Positions 9,722-60,891 of a stretch of DNA of 64,000 nt are shown one piece after another; the stretch's first letter is position 1; each line of letters starts with the position of its first letter. The notes below the pieces were generated by a model that was not told where the DNA came from, searched no databases, and worked only from the letters and a program-made list of their open reading frames with translations. The DNA is taken from IMG/VR virus record IMGVR_UViG_3300020188_000808, positions 203,784-267,783 of that record. One strand, written 5' to 3'. Both the position numbers and the translations under genes were made by a program.

Positions 9722-10378
9722 TTATTTATCTAGATCTTTACTACTTATAATTTTATCAATTCTCATCAAATCCTTCTTTAAGAACAATCTAATTAAGGTT
9801 ATAGTGGCAAAATCTTTAACATACATGTACATACCTTTGAGATTATATCCGCGTTGTATGTTACTTAATACTCTATTACCTATCTTAATTTTACTTTTAT
9901 GTTTGATGCAGAAGTTCGCAAGGTTCGGATCAGCAGTTCCGTTAAGTGTAATTTTATAACCAAAGTCTATAGTATCATTAATAATAATATTAGGGGTTAA
10001 GATTGCATTATCTTTGGGCATGTGTACTACGCAAACTGCGTTTAGTTTACTAGTTATAGTTTTAACCCATTCATAGTTATTAGTGTATATTCCTAAGTGA
10101 TAACTTTCACAACGAATTTTAAAATTTTCTTTTTGTTTTATGAATAACGAAAGTAATATCTGTAGATCGGATAGTTCTTCAGAAGTAACATTTACTGTTC
10201 TAAATCCAGACCCCCATTTAACAAAACCTTCAGCTTCGTATTGTTGAATAGCAGTATCGATAGACTTTCTTGCATGAGAAAAGTTTTTATTTCTAAAAAC
10301 AAAGCCTAATGCATTATGAAAGTCTACCTTATACTTGTATTGATCGTAGAATAGTTTATGAGAATCAACTTTTATCAA
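9722..10378 (-). CDS. Hypothetical protein
   Basis: 218 aa ORF overlapping the clpA stop; start codon uncertain. Confidence 0.6.
   Translation of the reverse strand: MIKVDSHKLFYDQYKYKVDFHNALGFVFRNKNFSHARKSIDTAIQQYEAEGFVKWGSGFRTVNVTSEELSDLQILLSLFIKQKENFKIRCESYHLGIYTNNYEWVKTITSKLNAVCVVHMPKDNAILTPNIIINDTIDFGYKITLNGTADPNLANFCIKHKSKIKIGNRVLSNIQRGYNLKGMYMYVKDFATITLIRLFLKKDLMRIDKIISSKDLDK
9723..9730 (-). promoter_or_regulatory. Late promoter GATAAATA
   Basis: 5 nt before the ATG at 9717. Confidence 0.7.
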
Positions 10379-12632
10379 CTGTTTCGGGCTCCTTGACTGT
10401 ATTTACAGTAGTCTGTAAGTCAAACGCTCCGTCTTTAATGTCGATATGTAGTTTACCACCGTTCTTTAGGTCACCAAACAGTAATACTTTAGACAACGGA
10501 GTTTTAATATCATTATCAATTACACGTTGCAACGGTCTTGCACCCATCTTGGGATCAAATCCTTTGTCTACTAAGTAATCAATTGCTTCGTCTGAAATAG
10601 TAGTTACAACATTCTTTTCAGTAAGCATTGTCTTAAGATCAACTAAGAACTTACCAACAATTTTAATCATTGTATTCTTTTCTAATCTACCAAATGTCAT
10701 AACACCGTCAAGTCTGTTACGGAATTCTGGAGCAAAGAACTTTTTAAGTTCGCCATCGTCGTGGTCTTTCTCCATATCGCCAAATCCTACTGCATTAGTA
10801 TCAGCTTCAGCTGAACCTAAGTTTGTTGTAAGGATTAATACAAGGTTTCTACAGTCAGCAGTCTTACCGTTACTACCTGTAACAAATCCGTTGTCCATAA
10901 TTTGTAATAATAATGAACTTACATCTGGGTGTGACTTCTCAATTTCATCAAGTAGTAATACACAGTTTGGATTCTCTTGTACTTTAGTAATTAGTAAGCC
11001 ACTATTTTCTTCAAAGCCTACATATCCTGGAGGCGAACCAATTAGTTTAGCAACACTATGTTTCTCTTGATACTCTGACATATCAAATCTAATTAGTTTT
11101 ACACCTAATTGTTTTGCAAGTTGTTTCGCTGTTTCAGTTTTACCTACACCAGTTGGCCCCATAAACACAAACGATCCAATTGGTTTGTTTTCTGCTTTAA
11201 GTCCTGCTTGTGCTACATGAATCTTATCAACAATGCTGTCAATTGAACTGTCTTGTCCGTAAATTGCGGCTTTCATATTATGGTTTAAATTAGCAAGGTT
11301 ACTAGTTTCAGTTTCCATAATTTGTTCTTTAGGCATGTTAATCATCTTAGCAAGTTCAAACTGTACTTCTTTCATACCAACTGTCTTGTTTGGTTCACTT
11401 GTAATATTAAATCTTGAACATGCTACATCTAATAAGTCAATAGCTTTGTCAGGTAATTTTTTATCTGTTTGATATTTCACACTAAGTTTAATTGCAGTAT
11501 CAATAGCTTCTTCTGTAATAGATACTTTGTGAAAGTCTTCGTAATATTTTTTAATACCTAATAAAATATCTTTAGTAATTTCATTAGTAGGCTCGTCAAC
11601 ACTTACACGAGCAAATCTACGCATCAATGCACGATCTTTTTCAAAGAACTTTCTATATTCTTCCCATGTAGTTGATGCTACAACTTTAATATTTCCTTTA
11701 GTAAGAATAGGCTTTAGCATATTAGCTAAGTCATTTGATTGACCACTACCGCCAGCACCTGCTCCACTAATCATATGGGCTTCGTCAATAAACATAATAG
11801 TTTTGCCTTTCTTCTTAAGGCCAGCAATAACTAATTTAAATCTTTCTTCAAAGTCTCCTCGGTATTTACTACCTGCTAACATACTACCAATGTCTAAGTT
11901 GTATACTGCATATTCTTTAAGAAACTCTGGAACATTGTTATTAACAATATTATATGCAAGTCCTTCTGCAATAGCAGTTTTACCTACACCAGGCTCACCA
12001 ACTAGCAATACATTGTTCTTCTGTCTACGGCCAAGTGCTAGTGCAATGCTTTCGAGTTCTTCTGAACGTCCAATAACAGGATCAATTTTTCCTGTTTCAG
12101 CATCAGTATTAAGATTAGTTGTAAACGAACGTAATGCACGATTGGCCATCCCGGCCATTTCCTCATCTTCAAAGTTAGCTTCAAGTTCATTGTTTAGATA
12201 GTCGGCAAACTTTTCTTTTTCAATGCCTACTTCGTTAATAAAGTACAATGCCCAACTTTTCTTTTCGTTAAACATACTTAGGAATACATCGCTAACTTCA
12301 ATAGAGTTGCGACCACTAAACAACACTTGTGTAAATGCTCTGTTTAGTACACGTTCTACAGCCTGTGTTTTCTTAGGCTTCCATTTTTTAGGAAGTTCCG
12401 CTCCTTCAGGCATTAGTAAGTCGTTACATTTAGTTTTAAGATAGTTCTCTACATTCTTTTTTATAAAATCAGGGTCAGTATCATTATACCCAGATAGAAT
12501 ATTAGAAAAGTCTTCTTCACATAACATTGCAAACAACAAATGCTCTAATGTAAGATACTCGTGATTTAACTTTTTAGTTACATCAAGTGCTTTGTCAAAT
12601 ATTTTCTGTAAATTTTCGCTAGGTTCAACCAT
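10365..12632 (-). CDS. clpA: ClpA-like AAA+ unfoldase
   Basis: Clp N domain. Walker A GEPGVGKT and GPTGVGKT, GSKYRGDFEER, RFDMSEYQEKH, PPGYVG. VGF ClpP-docking loop; no ClpB middle domain. Confidence 0.93.
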   Translation of the reverse strand: MVEPSENLQKIFDKALDVTKKLNHEYLTLEHLLFAMLCEEDFSNILSGYNDTDPDFIKKNVENYLKTKCNDLLMPEGAELPKKWKPKKTQAVERVLNRAFTQVLFSGRNSIEVSDVFLSMFNEKKSWALYFINEVGIEKEKFADYLNNELEANFEDEEMAGMANRALRSFTTNLNTDAETGKIDPVIGRSEELESIALALGRRQKNNVLLVGEPGVGKTAIAEGLAYNIVNNNVPEFLKEYAVYNLDIGSMLAGSKYRGDFEERFKLVIAGLKKKGKTIMFIDEAHMISGAGAGGSGQSNDLANMLKPILTKGNIKVVASTTWEEYRKFFEKDRALMRRFARVSVDEPTNEITKDILLGIKKYYEDFHKVSITEEAIDTAIKLSVKYQTDKKLPDKAIDLLDVACSRFNITSEPNKTVGMKEVQFELAKMINMPKEQIMETETSNLANLNHNMKAAIYGQDSSIDSIVDKIHVAQAGLKAENKPIGSFVFMGPTGVGKTETAKQLAKQLGVKLIRFDMSEYQEKHSVAKLIGSPPGYVGFEENSGLLITKVQENPNCVLLLDEIEKSHPDVSSLLLQIMDNGFVTGSNGKTADCRNLVLILTTNLGSAEADTNAVGFGDMEKDHDDGELKKFFAPEFRNRLDGVMTFGRLEKNTMIKIVGKFLVDLKTMLTEKNVVTTISDEAIDYLVDKGFDPKMGARPLQRVIDNDIKTPLSKVLLFGDLKNGGKLHIDIKDGAFDLQTTVNTVKEPETVDKS

Positions 12633-49990: not shown

Positions 49991-50692
49991 TTATTTCCAA
50001 TGCTCTTTGCACCAAGGATCAATGCAGTCTTTTGGATTAGGATCTCCGTGAAATACAGCAATACTTGTTTCAGGTTTAATGATTGGATCACCTGGGCTAA
50101 CAAAGTTTCGTTTGCCGTTGTATCTATTCATTTCAGGTCGTCCACGCATTTCCCACTTGTAACTTTGAATCCATTCATCTGGCCAAAAATTAAATTGTGA
50201 TTTTACATTAGCATATAACCAATCTTGATCTCCATGGTACTTACGTGCATTTTGTTTTGGATCTTTCATAAACTCGTGATATACGTTTGCATGTTGTCCT
50301 GTTTCTAATCTAAAACAACTTGAATTCATTCTTTCCCATTGACTTTGTACGCTACGATTAAAATCACGTATTACACAAAACTCTCCTGGCTTGTAAGTAA
50401 ACAACTTATCAATGTTACCAAATACAATAACATCAAGATCTAAAAATAATACAGTACCGTAACACCCAAAGTCTGGATTAAAGAACATTGTCTTATACCA
50501 CCAACCATTGATGTCGCTGTTTAACTGCAAAGGTTTAACTTGTATGCCCATGTCAAGTCCTGTTGGATCTTCTGTAAAGCAAACAAAGTTATGTGGTACA
50601 GTAAGGTTACGGGTTACCATTCTATAAAGAACATTAACATATTCTGCTGAATACTTTTTACCGTGCTTTAGGCATACTACATGATTGGGCAA
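49991..50692 (-). CDS. GT-A fold glycosyltransferase (GT8-like)
   Basis: FLDLDV DxD motif, NSS, GDQDW, FHGDPNP. Confidence 0.8.
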   Translation of the reverse strand: MPNHVVCLKHGKKYSAEYVNVLYRMVTRNLTVPHNFVCFTEDPTGLDMGIQVKPLQLNSDINGWWYKTMFFNPDFGCYGTVLFLDLDVIVFGNIDKLFTYKPGEFCVIRDFNRSVQSQWERMNSSCFRLETGQHANVYHEFMKDPKQNARKYHGDQDWLYANVKSQFNFWPDEWIQSYKWEMRGRPEMNRYNGKRNFVSPGDPIIKPETSIAVFHGDPNPKDCIDPWCKEHWK

Positions 50693-50704
50693 TTTAACTT
50701 CCTT

Positions 50705-51256
50705 CTAAATTGACGAATTAACTGGACCATAATTTTTAGTAGTCATTGCTTTTAAAGGATTGGCTCCTAGACTTAGTGTAACTCTTGGACCTAGTATTAA
50801 AGGTTTATGATTTGTAAGTCTTGGTAAAAGCAAAGCATCACCAGTTCTACAATGATAAATTTCTTTGTTCATTGTGTCTGCATCTGTTACAAGATATGCA
50901 GTTTCACCGTATCCTTGTATAAGCAAAACAGTTTCATAATCATTGTGTAAGAATAAACTGTTATGTCCGTCACTTAATGAATAAAATAAACTAGCATTAA
51001 AATGCCCTTCAGTTTCGTGTCTTTCATAATGCTTTTGAAACTCTAACAAATATTTTTGTATACGCTTGTCTGATCCTATGTCAGAAATATGTGTACTGCC
51101 TTTTACAAATTCATCTACATTTGATACTGTAGATTTATATTGATTTATTTCTACTAGTGTTGTAAAATTAATATCGTCTAGTGCATCTGGAAATGCATTT
51201 TTGTAATGTGCTACCTTAAGATTTTTACGATCTTCGTTTATTTGGTCCCAAATCAT
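50705..51256 (-). CDS. JmjC/cupin-like 2OG oxygenase
   Basis: HND..VLLIQGYG...GDALLLPR...H...PRVTLS. Confidence 0.7.
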   Translation of the reverse strand: MIWDQINEDRKNLKVAHYKNAFPDALDDINFTTLVEINQYKSTVSNVDEFVKGSTHISDIGSDKRIQKYLLEFQKHYERHETEGHFNASLFYSLSDGHNSLFLHNDYETVLLIQGYGETAYLVTDADTMNKEIYHCRTGDALLLPRLTNHKPLILGPRVTLSLGANPLKAMTTKNYGPVNSSI

Positions 51257-51264
51257 TTTAATTC

Positions 51265-51714
51265 CTATCCTTCATAGATCGCTGAGTTTGCTCCGTGTTC
51301 GGCACATTCTACCTTTACACAATAACAACGACCGTCTGTTGCTTCACGAATCAGTTTGTCAGCAAAGTAAAATGCGTGTTCTGCAAACTTCTCTGCACCT
51401 ACACCGCCAAACTCTCTTACTTCACACAAGCCTTTGTCTTGTAGATCATAAAAGTCTTGTTTGTGCGGATCGTTAAAGTCTACACAAGTCTTATGATCAA
51501 AACTATCTTCTAACCAAGCCTTCAAAGGCTTTAGTCCGCCAAAGTCGACTGCCCAGTTTTTATTGTCTAGATGATCACATCCAAATGTAAATGTAAATGC
51601 TAGACTGTAACCGTGTAGCAAATGGCAATGTGAATGATCTGCGTTAGGTTGTCTAAAGACTGCCGAAAGACCAATGTTGTGTCCGTAATGTTTTGTACTA
51701 TAATGTTTTCCCAT
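51265..51714 (-). CDS. queD: 6-carboxytetrahydropterin / 6-pyruvoyltetrahydropterin synthase
   Basis: CHLLHGYS, VDFG.LK, FDHK, E.GANSA.Y. Confidence 0.88.
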   Translation of the reverse strand: MGKHYSTKHYGHNIGLSAVFRQPNADHSHCHLLHGYSLAFTFTFGCDHLDNKNWAVDFGGLKPLKAWLEDSFDHKTCVDFNDPHKQDFYDLQDKGLCEVREFGGVGAEKFAEHAFYFADKLIREATDGRCYCVKVECAEHGANSAIYEG

Positions 51715-51793
51715 AATATTCTCCTACTATAATGTTTTTTTTATGGGCGGCAGAGTTAGAAGGGTTGACGCCAAGTCCTTTATTCATGTATAT

Positions 51794-51822
51794 ATTATAT
51801 ATGAGTTTTGTTTACTTGTCAA
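51794..51822 (-). promoter_or_regulatory. sigma70-type promoter of queD
   Basis: TTGACA-17-TATAAT. Confidence 0.85.
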
Positions 51823-52423
51823 GTGTTTTGTGGTGTGTATTAAAACTCATTGTTATCCGTTTTTCAGTTGGATTTGGTTTTGTATAATGATACAACCAAC
51901 TTGGAAATAATATTAAGAATCCTGTCCTAACATCAAATTCCATTTCGTCTGCTGTGTATTCTGTTGCTTTAGCATGTATTTCAGACATCTTAGGACCAAG
52001 TATTGGACTTTTAAATATTAATGGAGAACTGTTTGGTTCAACAAATGGATAATATGCTCCACTGACAATACTTAGTTCGTGTCTGTGTAAATCTACACGA
52101 CCGTCAAGTTGTTGTGCATTTAACCAACTTTTTGATATTTCGGTATATTCTAAGCCTGCATGAAAACAATATTCATTGATACACATTTGTATATCGTCTT
52201 TAATTTTAAATCTGTCAAGCACGTTCATTTCTAATTGACTAGTAGTTTTTCCTTTACCAATCTCTTCAGGCCAATCGGTAACATTATTAGATTCAACGTA
52301 GTCTAATATTTCTTTATTGCTTGGATGGTCGTTTAAGTTATAAACTTGTACTAGTGTAGGAAAGATTGGATAGTCTGCTTTCCTAAACGGTCCATCAACT
52401 ATCTGTGCTTTCATGTGGGTCAA
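51812..52423 (-). CDS. 2OG-Fe(II) oxygenase
   Basis: HRH..SIVSGAYYP...FPSWLYH...KRITMSFN. Confidence 0.85.
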   Translation of the reverse strand: MTHMKAQIVDGPFRKADYPIFPTLVQVYNLNDHPSNKEILDYVESNNVTDWPEEIGKGKTTSQLEMNVLDRFKIKDDIQMCINEYCFHAGLEYTEISKSWLNAQQLDGRVDLHRHELSIVSGAYYPFVEPNSSPLIFKSPILGPKMSEIHAKATEYTADEMEFDVRTGFLILFPSWLYHYTKPNPTEKRITMSFNTHHKTLDK

Positions 52424-53042
52424 TCCTATAATCTCTTATTTTTGCATACGCGGCTCTGTCACTGTGTCGAATAGTATTAAAACTAACTGTGTATCGTTTT
52501 TCTGTTGTGTTTGACGGCACATGATGTCGCATCCAGCTTGGAAATAAACATAGCAATCCTGTTTTAGGATAACATTCTAATTCATATCTATTGTAGTCTG
52601 TTAGTCCTAGTGCTGAATAGTTCATAAAGTTTACTTGATTAGGGTTTTCAAAAACCAAAGGCGCACTACCTCCATCTACATAAGGATAGTATGCTCCGCT
52701 GACAATACTTCTTTCATGTCGATGTGCATCTACTTGTCCGTTCTGATATAACGAGTTAAACCAACTAGTTGATATTAGAGTGTAATCAACACCAAGATGT
52801 TGTGTATAAATGTCAACACATTCTTGTATAGTTTTCCAAAGGTTAGTTAGTCTTTTATCATTAAGGAACTGTTCATCTCCTGTGATGTAACTACTCTGTC
52901 CTTCGTGTACTAGTTTATGGTCACCAAATTTTGTATACGTGTTAATCATTTCCATTACAGTATTTTCATCAGGATGTCCTTCGATGTCAAATGTTGTAAC
53001 TAAACTTGGAAACGCATTATGGTGTGCAGGCTCTAACTTCAT
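52395..53042 (-). CDS. 2OG-Fe(II) oxygenase, paralogue of the adjacent gene
   Basis: HRH..SIVSGAYYP...FPSWMRH...KRYTVSFN. Confidence 0.85.
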   Translation of the reverse strand: MKLEPAHHNAFPSLVTTFDIEGHPDENTVMEMINTYTKFGDHKLVHEGQSSYITGDEQFLNDKRLTNLWKTIQECVDIYTQHLGVDYTLISTSWFNSLYQNGQVDAHRHERSIVSGAYYPYVDGGSAPLVFENPNQVNFMNYSALGLTDYNRYELECYPKTGLLCLFPSWMRHHVPSNTTEKRYTVSFNTIRHSDRAAYAKIRDYRIDPHESTDS

Positions 53043-53593
53043 TTAAGTTCCTCTAAATCTAAATTCTTTATGTTACTATACTTATCTGGCCATTTTTTTG
53101 TAGAGTAATAATTGAATGTAATATCAGGAAAGTGTTCAAATACTTTGTTTATTTGGTATATCCAATAACTTGGGTCAACTGGTCTAGCAGTTGATTTGCT
53201 GTAGTTTTTAGTATCCTTGTAAATATTTCCATGGTACAAATCAAACCCTACTAGGTTAACTGGTTCTCTCCATTCATATGCTAATCTTGCTCCAATTAGC
53301 ACAGCAAAAGGACCACTGCCCCAATGCCAAGGATCATCTGGTCTTGCTGTACCTCTGTAAGGTAAGTCAGGTAAACACTCAACTCCTTTGAAATCTTTAA
53401 ACCAGTCTTTACGAGTATATAAACTGCCCTTAAATGTGTTTGCTTCTAGTACTTCTTTAACCATTCGCTTGTCGCAACAGACTAGATGATCTACTGTATA
53501 ATCTCTATACAGGGCATTACATCCTACTTTAGTATCTCTAATCAGATCTAAATCAATGTTATATCTAGTTTCACCGTTGCCAATTACAAGCAT
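53039..53593 (-). CDS. CstII/Maf-like (GT42/DUF115-fold) putative CMP-sugar transferase
   Basis: Start MLVIGNGETR at 53593; GCNALY, SG..A...A, LVGFDLY parallel CstII IAGNGPS / RCNQFY / TSG / LSGIDFY. Confidence 0.55.
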   Translation of the reverse strand: MLVIGNGETRYNIDLDLIRDTKVGCNALYRDYTVDHLVCCDKRMVKEVLEANTFKGSLYTRKDWFKDFKGVECLPDLPYRGTARPDDPWHWGSGPFAVLIGARLAYEWREPVNLVGFDLYHGNIYKDTKNYSKSTARPVDPSYWIYQINKVFEHFPDITFNYYSTKKWPDKYSNIKNLDLEELK

Positions 53594-53598
53594 AACAT

Positions 53599-53611
53599 TA
53601 TTTAATAAATA
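53599..53611. promoter_or_regulatory. Overlapping divergent late promoters
   Basis: ATTAAATA on minus (53599-53606) and AATAAATA on plus (53604-53611). Confidence 0.6.
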
Positions 53612-53638
53612 CAATATACAAAAGGAACAAATACGAAC

Positions 53639-56020
53639 ATGACTGCATACTACGATTTTTTCAGATACGTTAAACTATATTCCCCTGACGGAACAACATT
53701 AGAAGCTACTGTAGAAGCTGATAGTGTTACAGATAGTATTAATTTTGTTAGAGGAAACGGTGTTGCTTGGAACACAGTTGATGTCGGTACAGACACGTTT
53801 AAATTTGATGTCGATTACAGTCTTAGTATTCCATTAGCAAGTACAGATATAACACTTACTGACGTTAATAATGCAACCTCAACAATCAGTTTAGTTGCAG
53901 GTGGTAATATGATTATTACTAGAGATAATGCAAATCAATTAACTATTGCGGCATTGGTTGGCGGTGTTAGTAAATCAATTCAAAACATTACAACAACTAA
54001 CCCAGTTGTAATTACAACAACAAATGCACACGCATTCACTGATGGTACAGAAGTAACTATTGTTGATGTTGTTGGAACTACACAGCTTAACGGTAACGAA
54101 TACTTCATGGACGTACAAACTAGTGACACGTTTGCTTTGTACACAGATGCACAATTAACAACACCATTAGACGGCACAGCATTTACAGCATATGTCAGTG
54201 GCGGAGTTGCTACTGCTGATTACGGTGGAGCAAAGAACGCATTTAAAACTATTCAGGTAACAGGTCAAAGTCCTGTTGTTGCTGACAACATTCAAGATAT
54301 TTTAAACCTAACAGGTGGAACAGGTATTGACATTACAACAACACCTGGAACAGACTCTATTGCATGGGCGATAGACAATACAGTAACAACACTTGCAGAT
54401 GCACAAACTTTACTAAACAAAACTTTAACATCTCCAATCATTGCGGCAATTAAACCAAGTGCAAGTAATTCATGGTCATTGCCTGATAGTAACGATACAT
54501 TTGTAGGTAAAGCTACAACAGACACGTTTACTAACAAGAGTGTTGACTTAACAAATAATACACTAACGACAACTATAGCACAATTGAATACAGCCGTTAG
54601 TGACGAAACAGTAGTAGCTAGAGATACAACAGACACACTTACAAACAAGTCAATTAGTTTAACTGATAATACAGTAACAGGTACAATAGCAGAACTTAAT
54701 ACCGCAGTTAGTGATGAAACTGTAGTAGGTAGAGATACAACTGATACACTTACAAATAAAAGTATTGATCTAACTGATAATACTGTAACAGGAACCTTTG
54801 CGGAATTTAATACTGCGGTTAGTGACGAAACACTTGTTGGACTTGATGCATCACAAACATTAACAGCTAAAACGCTAACTGATCCTATTCTATCTCCTAC
54901 TGCTACAACAGCAGGTAAGATTGAGTTTTTAGAAGGAACAGACAACGGTACTAACAAAGCAACACTAATAGGTCCTGCAAGTACTGCTGATGTAACTATT
55001 ACATTGCCAGCCGCAACAGATACACTAGTTGGTAAAGCAACAACAGATACATTTACAAATAAAAGCGGTAGTAATAGTCAGTGGACAAATGATGAAGCAT
55101 ATATTAAAGCTGACACAAGTGACACACTTACAAACAAGTCAATTAGTTTAACAACTAATACTGTAACAGGTACACTTGTAGAATTTAATACTGCGGTTAG
55201 TGATGCTACTCTTGTTTCAACAACAGGTATAGAAACCCTTACTAACAAAACTTTAACATCTCCGACCTTTAGTGGAACAGCAACATCATTCACTTCAACA
55301 GGTATTGATGACAATGCAACAAGCACATCTATCACTATAGATTCATCACAGAGTGTAGGTATTGGCGGAGCACCAGTAGCTCTTAGTGGAAATGCTACCC
55401 CAGGATTAACACTTACTTCAAATGGTCCTTTTATACTTTTAAAAGATGCAAACAACGCAAATAAAACAACATACATTTCTAATAATAGTGGGGTACTTCA
55501 ATTTGGTATAGTTGATGATGATGGCGTAACAAATAAAACTGAACATATGCAGATTACTGATACAGGTACAGTACAAGTAGCGTCAGCCGCAAATTTTGAA
55601 ACTCCTAATATTACAGGATCCATTCCAGGCATGACATTTGTTATGACTATTGGGGGAATTACAACGATAGGTGATGGTGCAACAACTGTTACAAGATATG
55701 CTACTCCAGGAAATGATTGGCAAGCAAATTTAGCCATAGGTACTAGCATGCCAGTTACTAGCAATATGAAATGTGTTGCAATGTCTGTTCTTTGTGATGG
55801 TGTGCTAACTGTTGGTTCTTCAAATGTAACACTTATGAAAAACGGTGTTGATACAACAACATCTGTTACCTTTGCTAATGGAGATGGCGGAACTGGTGAT
55901 GTAAAACAAAGCACAGTAAATAATAGCTTTGACGCTGGTGACAGAGTAGGAATCAAAGTAGTCACACTATCAGCAACTGCTAGAGCATACCTTGTTATGA
56001 CTCAGTGGGAATTAATTTAA
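53639..56020 (+). CDS. Thr-rich accessory tail fibre/virion protein
   Basis: FCCH-like domain (ITTTNPVVITTTNAH...GTTQLNG), TLTNK repeats, TLPAATDTLV; lone plus-strand structural gene. Confidence 0.75.
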   Translation: MTAYYDFFRYVKLYSPDGTTLEATVEADSVTDSINFVRGNGVAWNTVDVGTDTFKFDVDYSLSIPLASTDITLTDVNNATSTISLVAGGNMIITRDNANQLTIAALVGGVSKSIQNITTTNPVVITTTNAHAFTDGTEVTIVDVVGTTQLNGNEYFMDVQTSDTFALYTDAQLTTPLDGTAFTAYVSGGVATADYGGAKNAFKTIQVTGQSPVVADNIQDILNLTGGTGIDITTTPGTDSIAWAIDNTVTTLADAQTLLNKTLTSPIIAAIKPSASNSWSLPDSNDTFVGKATTDTFTNKSVDLTNNTLTTTIAQLNTAVSDETVVARDTTDTLTNKSISLTDNTVTGTIAELNTAVSDETVVGRDTTDTLTNKSIDLTDNTVTGTFAEFNTAVSDETLVGLDASQTLTAKTLTDPILSPTATTAGKIEFLEGTDNGTNKATLIGPASTADVTITLPAATDTLVGKATTDTFTNKSGSNSQWTNDEAYIKADTSDTLTNKSISLTTNTVTGTLVEFNTAVSDATLVSTTGIETLTNKTLTSPTFSGTATSFTSTGIDDNATSTSITIDSSQSVGIGGAPVALSGNATPGLTLTSNGPFILLKDANNANKTTYISNNSGVLQFGIVDDDGVTNKTEHMQITDTGTVQVASAANFETPNITGSIPGMTFVMTIGGITTIGDGATTVTRYATPGNDWQANLAIGTSMPVTSNMKCVAMSVLCDGVLTVGSSNVTLMKNGVDTTTSVTFANGDGGTGDVKQSTVNNSFDAGDRVGIKVVTLSATARAYLVMTQWELI
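54515..55225 (+). repeat. 37-aa (111-bp) repeats in the fibre gene
   Basis: TxDTxTNKSxxLTxNTxTxTxxxxNTAVSD units at 54515, 54626 and 54737, plus a fourth at 55115. Confidence 0.85.
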
Positions 56021-60814: not shown

Positions 60815-60891
60815 TGGCGCACCCGAAAGGATTCGAACCTCTGACCCCAACTTCCGCAAAGTTGTGCTCTATCCAGCTGAGCTACGGGTGC
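60815..60891 (-). tRNA. tRNA-Arg, anticodon GCG, CCA encoded
   Basis: Full cloverleaf: GCACCCG-TA-GCTC-AGCTGGATA-GAGC-A-CAACT-TTGCGGA-AGTTG-GGGTC-AGAGG-TTCGAAT-CCTTT-CGGGTGC-GCCA. Confidence 0.93.

Follow-up and report, generated by a model that had tools for sequence, protein, structure and literature searches.

The leader of a queD-like gene in a giant uncultivated phage contains a small predicted H-type RNA pseudoknot. The same element, with compensating base changes, was found directly upstream of this gene in 221 of 240 loci that had been fetched by similarity to PTPS/QueD-like proteins alone. It has no match in Rfam 15, and it looks like a new metabolite-sensing switch that turns translation on. 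The element is very probably a real cis-regulatory RNA switch and probably, although with less confidence, a small-molecule riboswitch with ON logic; binding of a small molecule and an effect on expression were not measured. The analyzed stretch (the window) comprises 64,000 nucleotides and is the last 64 kb (positions 203,784 to 267,783) of the 267,783-bp IMG/VR virus record IMGVR_UViG_3300020188_000808 (G000), which has 36% G+C and belongs to a T4-like jumbo phage estimated at about 350 kb. The nearest cultured relatives seen were the jumbo phages PA5oct, Phosso and Acinetobacter phage MD-2021a, whose proteins are about 42% identical to a ClpA/Lon-like ATPase of 755 aa (phrog_4871, 808 bits) encoded at 10365-12632 on the minus strand of the window.

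All sequence features listed in the preliminary description were found on the minus strand at the place given there. A sigma-70-type promoter with a 12/12 consensus match (TTGACA 51822-51817, 17-nt spacer, TATAAT 51799-51794) overlaps the stop codon of the upstream 2OG-Fe(II) oxygenase gene and is the only 12/12 match in 51000-52600. The transcription start is inferred to lie near 51787 and has not been mapped. In the leader, which runs from about 51787 to the AUG at 51714-51712, AAGG (51780-51777) can pair with CCUU (51763-51760) to form P1, and GGCG in the enclosed loop (51772-51769) can pair with CGCC (51749-51746) to form P2. Downstream follow AUAAAAAAAAC (A-run 51742-51735) and AGGAG (51725-51721). 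The motif (51780-51746) has about 50% G+C.

The regulated gene (51265-51714, minus strand) encodes a 149-aa PTPS/QueD-like T-fold enzyme (Pfam PF01242, 46 bits; phrog_2389 'QueD-like', 127 bits), whereas the NCBIfam QueD model scored 32.7 bits, below its cut-off. Alignment to a solved QueD and to a canonical PTPS showed C-x3-H-G-Y in place of the usual HGH. The usual upstream histidine also seems to be replaced (FRQ or YRQW), although this rests on reading the sequences. Probably co-transcribed are a cupin/JmjC-like ORF (50705-51256) and a GT8-like glycosyltransferase gene (49991-50692). The conserved gene order at 49991-53614 (minus strand) is an unknown 191-aa gene, 2OG-Fe(II) oxygenase(s), motif plus PTPS, GT8-like glycosyltransferase and UvdE. 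The GT8-like gene directly follows PTPS in 107 of 182 related loci, but the cupin ORF lies between them in only 4. On the opposite strand, a 793-aa ORF at 53639-56020 (plus strand) is full of near-identical repeats (of the kind TDTLTNKSI-LT-NTVTGT-AE-NTAVSDETVV) and looks like a fibre protein.

The single sequence gave no support for a structured leader, as its nested minimum free energy (MFE) was no better than that of shuffles (z-score 0.61), which is expected, and uninformative, for a pseudoknot. Comparison settled the question. An absence of sequence or structure conservation among phage queD leaders, together with no ligand-dependent change, had been named in advance as the outcome that would refute the interpretation; conservation was observed, and ligand-dependent change was not tested. 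Eighty loci fetched only by similarity to the QueD-like protein show the element just upstream of the gene, and both helices change sequence while keeping complementarity. P1 appears as AAGG/CCUU, GAGG/CCUC, GUGG/CCAC, GUAG/CUAC and UCGG/CCGA, and P2 as GGCG/CGCC, GACG/CGUC, AGCG/CGCU, AUGC/GCAU and UGACA/UGUCA. In an alignment of 33 distinct variants (A1), 94.7% of pair cells were paired, 7 of 8 pairs carried compensatory changes, none of 500 shuffles reached the observed values, and sliding the partners dropped pairing to 32-67%.

A degenerate pattern scan of viral contigs then revealed a much wider family in which P1 is usually 5 bp (AGCGG/CCGCU, UGCGG/CCGCA, ACCGG/CCGGU and others), while in the window it has only four pairs. 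In the alignment based on these loci (A2), 91.3-92.8% of cells were paired. Because the pattern had fixed many loop bases, 160 further loci were fetched by protein alone, using two other PTPS subfamilies. A covariance model (R2) found the motif in 77/80 and 77/80 of them, and in 67/80 of the first set. The corresponding alignments A3 and A4 showed 94.0% and 96.4% of cells paired. Across these wider sets, 8-10 of 10-12 pairs showed compensatory changes, 0/500 shuffles reached the paired-cell and covariation scores, and slid controls over the four alignments gave 29-67%. The sequences are related, so the shuffle statistics overstate independence, and A2-A4 were aligned by models that contain P2; loop invariance is unbiased only in A1, A3 and A4. 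However, P1 and the additional helix P2a (see below) were not part of the models' structure, so that their covariation is not a product of the fitting. P1 is 99% paired in A3 and A4, with two or three covarying pairs.

P2a was proposed by RNAalifold on its own and consists of two more pairs between the loop bases UCA and the UGC preceding the P2 3′ strand. Its C-G pair is invariant, and its A-U pair becomes G-C in every UCG...CCGC variant of three PTPS subfamilies and is never broken (72+5, 49+6, 44+1). P2 is therefore extended across a U/C mismatch (U51768/C51750 in the window) by P2a (C51767-G51751 and A51766-U51752). In the window, L1 (ACUU) is 51776-51773, L2 comprises A51765 and the invariant C51764, and L3 (CUAACUC) is 51759-51753. 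Family-wide, the 35-48-nt pseudoknot has a P1 of 4-5 bp; an L1 reading N-C-U-(U) plus 0-5 further nt; a P2 of 4-5 bp continued by P2a; a two-base L2 directly before the P1 3′ strand; and an L3 of 7-11 nt (42% A, 38% U, 20% C, almost free of G). The base before the invariant C is U (52), A (24) or C (1) in 77 distinct rows. Covariance models R1 and R2 scored the window's site at 60.8 and 48.8 bits, respectively, as the only hit in the 268-kb genome. A divergent leader in locus L031 (about 2915-2990), with P1 GUGG/CCAC, a long L1, CCGC and the P2 3′ partner displaced by about 7 nt, was scored by neither model and may be a decaying or variant copy.

The gene after the motif always belongs to the PTPS family, comprising four phage subfamilies that share S-T-K-x-Y ... 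S-H-C-x3-H-G-Y and one canonical PTPS. In two apparent exceptions, a methyltransferase or an unknown gene is inserted and PTPS comes second, and one contig (L302) carries a canonical and a phage-type PTPS in tandem behind one motif. Each of eleven large phage records (69-303 kb) contained exactly one motif, and each of the five of them that were searched for the PTPS family contained one PTPS gene, next to the motif. R2 gave no hit other than the 67 sites in the 483 kb of phage DNA searched around the first set of loci, and the FolE/QueE-like cluster of G000 carries no second copy. The motif was absent from 19 of the 240 loci, in some because the contig ends there, so it is dispensable in some lineages.

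Conservation of a peptide was ruled out, since loop-length differences are not multiples of three and upstream AUGs fall in different frames; a small upstream ORF starting at the inferred transcript start was rejected because neither its frame nor its start is conserved. It is also very unlikely that the motif is a DNA-level promoter or operator element, or a chance similarity. Interleaved inverted repeats that keep complementarity while their sequence changes, with G-U pairs tolerated on the sense strand (31 G-U against 17 A-C cells), indicate RNA, and 221/240 occurrences cannot be chance. In 38 of 79 related leaders, including the window, a promoter scoring ≥10/12 ends 6-17 nt before the motif, placing it at the extreme 5′ end of the mRNA. 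The one observation in favor of a DNA element comes from about a third of leaders ('type A', e.g. loci L286, L248 and L290). These lack a strong upstream promoter; the motif follows the stop codon of the preceding gene, and a near-consensus promoter (TTTACA, 17 nt, TGnTATAAT) is embedded in L3, the P2 3′ strand and the loop of a hairpin that sequesters the Shine-Dalgarno (SD) sequence. Transcripts from it would lack the aptamer, so it could bypass the switch; this arrangement is unexplained. Metatranscriptome assemblies from salt marshes (14 runs) contain the stretch, although as assembled contigs they show neither ends nor strand and could include DNA carry-over. Contigs of related strains diverge from the window just upstream of P1, at 51780, 51781 and 51796.

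The A-run, which had been taken for a displaced AUAAAAAAC tail, was not supported as part of the motif. It occurs only in the window's closest relatives (A8 in the window and L002, A5 in L047, A4 in L008 and L027) and is absent from other lineages. In the window it is a variable spacer (51742-51735) inside the loop of the sequestering helix, and its length differences between near-identical relatives look like slippage without sequence constraint. What is conserved is complementarity: the last bases of the P2 3′ strand and the 4-8 bases that follow can pair with the SD or start-codon region. In the window, CCCAUAA (51747-51741), whose first two bases are the last two of the P2 3′ strand, pairs with UUAUGGG (51716-51710) in the MFE of 51749-51703 (-6.2 kcal/mol). 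Elsewhere the equivalent pairs are CCAUUAUU/AAUAAUGG, UGCCAUUG/CAAUGGCA and GUCAUC/GAUGGC. In type A leaders a local hairpin, CCUAUG...CAUAGG, takes the GG of the SD sequence, and one variant carries the compensatory change CCUAUA/UAUAGG. All three platform types use the same switching strand.

The MFE of the stretch from P2 to AUG+12 paired the switching strand with the ribosome-binding region (51725-51710 in the window) in 72/81 distinct leaders and in 92/94 of the unbiased sets, where the two exceptions have the same hairpin. The sequestering helix shares 2-4 bases with the P2 3′ strand. Cognate duplexes were more stable than permuted pairings (-7.23 against -5.52±0.20, and -8.41 against -6.92±0.20 in the second set; 0/5000 trials in each case), and also more stable than shuffled strands (-4.18) or the L3 control (-3.02). 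A simple anti-SD role for CCUUCU in the P1 3′ strand and L3 was considered as well, but it holds only in part of the family and was replaced by the P2-strand sequestor. No terminator-like site was found, and a transcription-termination switch was therefore dropped.

P2 and the sequestor need the same GCC and exclude each other. In the favored model, the sequestering helix forms without ligand and blocks initiation, whereas a ligand locking the pseudoknot would take the shared GCC away from the sequestor and open the ribosome site. The pseudoknot, its covariation, its exclusive association with PTPS/QueD-like genes and the competing helix are results of the comparison, whereas the binding of a small molecule and the ON logic are our inferences. 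ON control of a biosynthetic gene is unusual.

Two other readings accept the RNA structure but not a ligand. It is possible, though unlikely, that the leader is a protein-binding translational operator, in which the QueD-like enzyme or another phage RNA binder shifts the same equilibrium, in the manner of the T4 gene 32 leader. That leader likewise has a 5′ H-type pseudoknot upstream of an A/U-rich linker and the ribosome site, but it is a nucleation site for gp32, senses no metabolite, and its 3′ strand has no known alternative pairing with the start codon. The phage is T4-like, in half the cases the pseudoknot sits at the very 5′ end of the mRNA, it is followed by an A/U-rich linker of variable length (16-37 nt from the P2 end to the AUG), and conserved loop bases would suit a protein as well as a metabolite. 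Only the anatomy is compatible; protein binding was not assayed. However, the element precedes four divergent PTPS subfamilies and one canonical PTPS with the same loop bases, so a self-binding enzyme would have had to keep one RNA-binding surface across all of them. The layout, with an invariant unpaired C between two stacked helices, is that of small ligand pockets, and no candidate RNA-binding gene is syntenic. Less likely still is a ligand-independent device setting translation efficiency, mRNA stability or temperature response, or timing expression through co-transcriptional folding. Two mutually exclusive folds can act as a thermometer or kinetic timer, and nothing tested here demands a ligand. 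Yet eleven or more loop positions are invariant in sets fetched without reference to the motif, much more than a simple structural competition needs, and the exclusive link to one enzyme family argues for pathway-specific sensing.

A scan against Rfam, which the preliminary description had proposed as a check, returned no family for the leader. At gathering thresholds, Rfam 15 gave only a tRNA gene in the whole window (60818-60891, minus strand, 63.8 bits), and a permissive scan (E≤10) of 51600-51900 against all families gave only noise hits, a fungal snoRNA and a lncRNA piece. The preQ1-I model RF00522 (gathering threshold 39 bits), run on the whole genome at E≤10, gave four hits of 9-12 bits, none at the queD leader. 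Literature searches found no description of the element.

The layout is nevertheless close to preQ1-I as summarized in a review (PMC11625349): a minimal H-type pseudoknot of similar size in front of a queuosine-pathway gene, with a P1 of about 5 bp closed by G-C pairs, a specificity C preceded by U or A immediately 5′ of the P1 3′ strand, and an A/U-rich loop that should cross the P1 minor groove. It differs in that (i) L3 is not an adenine run into P2 but ends in an invariant A-Y-U-C, followed by the P2a bases and a C before P2; (ii) L1 reads N-C-U-(U); (iii) the ribosome site is not part of P2 but lies 16-37 nt beyond it; (iv) the P2 3′ strand is the anti-start, predicting ON, the opposite of all known preQ1 switches; and (v) it was found only in phages that lack QueC. 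We therefore regard the element as working like a preQ1-I-type pocket but not as a member of that family. An ordinary, divergent preQ1-I switch turning queD off when preQ1 is abundant is very unlikely, given the lack of a model hit, these differences and the lack of QueC in the 56 records examined, without which the phages cannot make preQ0 or preQ1 themselves; binding of either compound was not assayed.

Among other switches, the guanidine-III riboswitch (ykkC-III, RF01763) is likewise an H-type pseudoknot of about 41 nt that turns genes on at the level of translation, but it gave no hit at E≤10, its conserved loop sequences differ, and it is associated with guanidine exporter or carboxylase genes rather than PTPS/QueD-like genes. 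The Vibrio vulnificus add adenine riboswitch has the same regulatory logic, in that the 3′ strand of an aptamer helix alternatively pairs with the SD/AUG region and ligand binding releases the ribosome site, but its aptamer is a three-way junction of the purine class without sequence relationship. The THF-II riboswitch (folE motif, RF03111) senses a pterin-type heterocycle and controls a gene of the GTP cyclohydrolase branch, but it is a bacterial hairpin with internal loops, gave no Rfam match here and is predicted to be OFF.

Outside the uncultivated phages, the motif was not found in the genomes searched. R2 gave nothing at E≤0.1 in 609 sampled genomes of Bacteroidia, Alpha- and Gammaproteobacteria and Cyanobacteriota, of which only the best 40 candidates per genome were scored. 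A non-exhaustive degenerate pattern scan of 185,579 prokaryote genomes yielded chance matches only (best 18.7 bits with R1) and says nothing about bacteria. No bacterial example that would hint at the ligand was found in the genomes sampled. Searches by blastn of the locus and of the 39-nt motif against 50,697 phage records gave nothing relevant. In six cultured phages with the nearest QueD homologues, the gene sits in tightly packed QueE-QueC-QueD-FolE operons with no room for the motif, and R2 gave only noise.

The genome context keeps more than one ligand possible. At 186000-197000 of the G000 record (L362), outside the window, one same-strand cluster holds a 2OG oxygenase, a phosphoribosyltransferase (PRT), an unknown gene, a HIT protein, an unknown gene, FolE, a QueE-like radical-SAM gene (phrog_2076, 172 bits) and two more unknown genes. 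In 26 related loci the QueE-like gene lies close to PTPS, directly downstream of it in locus L303, and PRT or HIT genes precede the motif. QueC was absent from 56 records, apart from partial PP-loop matches, two of them just above the family's cut-off, and TGT was absent from G000. Together with the separate QueD-like gene, this suggests a 7-deazapurine nucleotide route through a PRTase rather than DNA transglycosylation; the gene set recalls routes that attach a 7-deazapurine base to PRPP, as in tubercidin and toyocamycin biosynthesis, rather than the preQ0/DpdA route. The cultured cyanophage BUCT-ZZ01 has a similar QueE-PRT-QueD-FolE set. One locus instead has a short-chain dehydrogenase after PTPS, as in pterin pathways. 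Also outside the window (150000-171500 of G000), nine radical-SAM open frames of 314-457 aa are clustered within about 21 kb, and a similar cluster of eight lies in a related 157-kb record; their function was not examined.

By analogy with preQ1-I (PMC11625349), the invariant C before the P1 3′ strand would read the Watson-Crick face of a guanine-like heterocycle stacked between P1 and P2. Candidate ligands are a 7-deazapurine (CDG, preQ0, preQ1 or a nucleotide of these) or a pterin (H2NTP, CPH4); for an ON switch, a guanine-like heterocycle is the most plausible kind, either the substrate H2NTP or a 7-deazapurine. The interpretation offered in the preliminary description was thus supported in part. 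A conserved pseudoknot that no described family matches, its tight link to a queD-like gene, the anatomy of a cis-regulatory switch and the resemblance to preQ1-I without standard membership were all borne out. The displaced tail was not, the loop is not simply non-canonical since part of it forms P2a, and the proposed ligands (7-deazaguanine, pterin, GTP) were not tested.

Possibly, though we hold this only tentatively, the element represents a new riboswitch class so far known only from giant (about 350 kb) uncultivated T4-like phages, using a preQ1-I-like pocket with inverted (ON) logic to sense a guanine-like intermediate of a phage-encoded 7-deazapurine or pterin pathway, through which the phage would time production of a modified nucleotide. 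If confirmed, this would add a riboswitch class with an exceptionally small aptamer, apparently confined to viruses and short enough for immediate biochemical and structural work. It would be a natural example of a preQ1-I-like fold rewired from OFF to ON, and perhaps retuned to another ligand, which bears on how minimal pseudoknot pockets evolve new specificities. It would also mark the QueD step as the controlled point of a 7-deazapurine or pterin pathway in abundant marine, salt-marsh and freshwater jumbo phages, and so give a handle on what these phages make and when.
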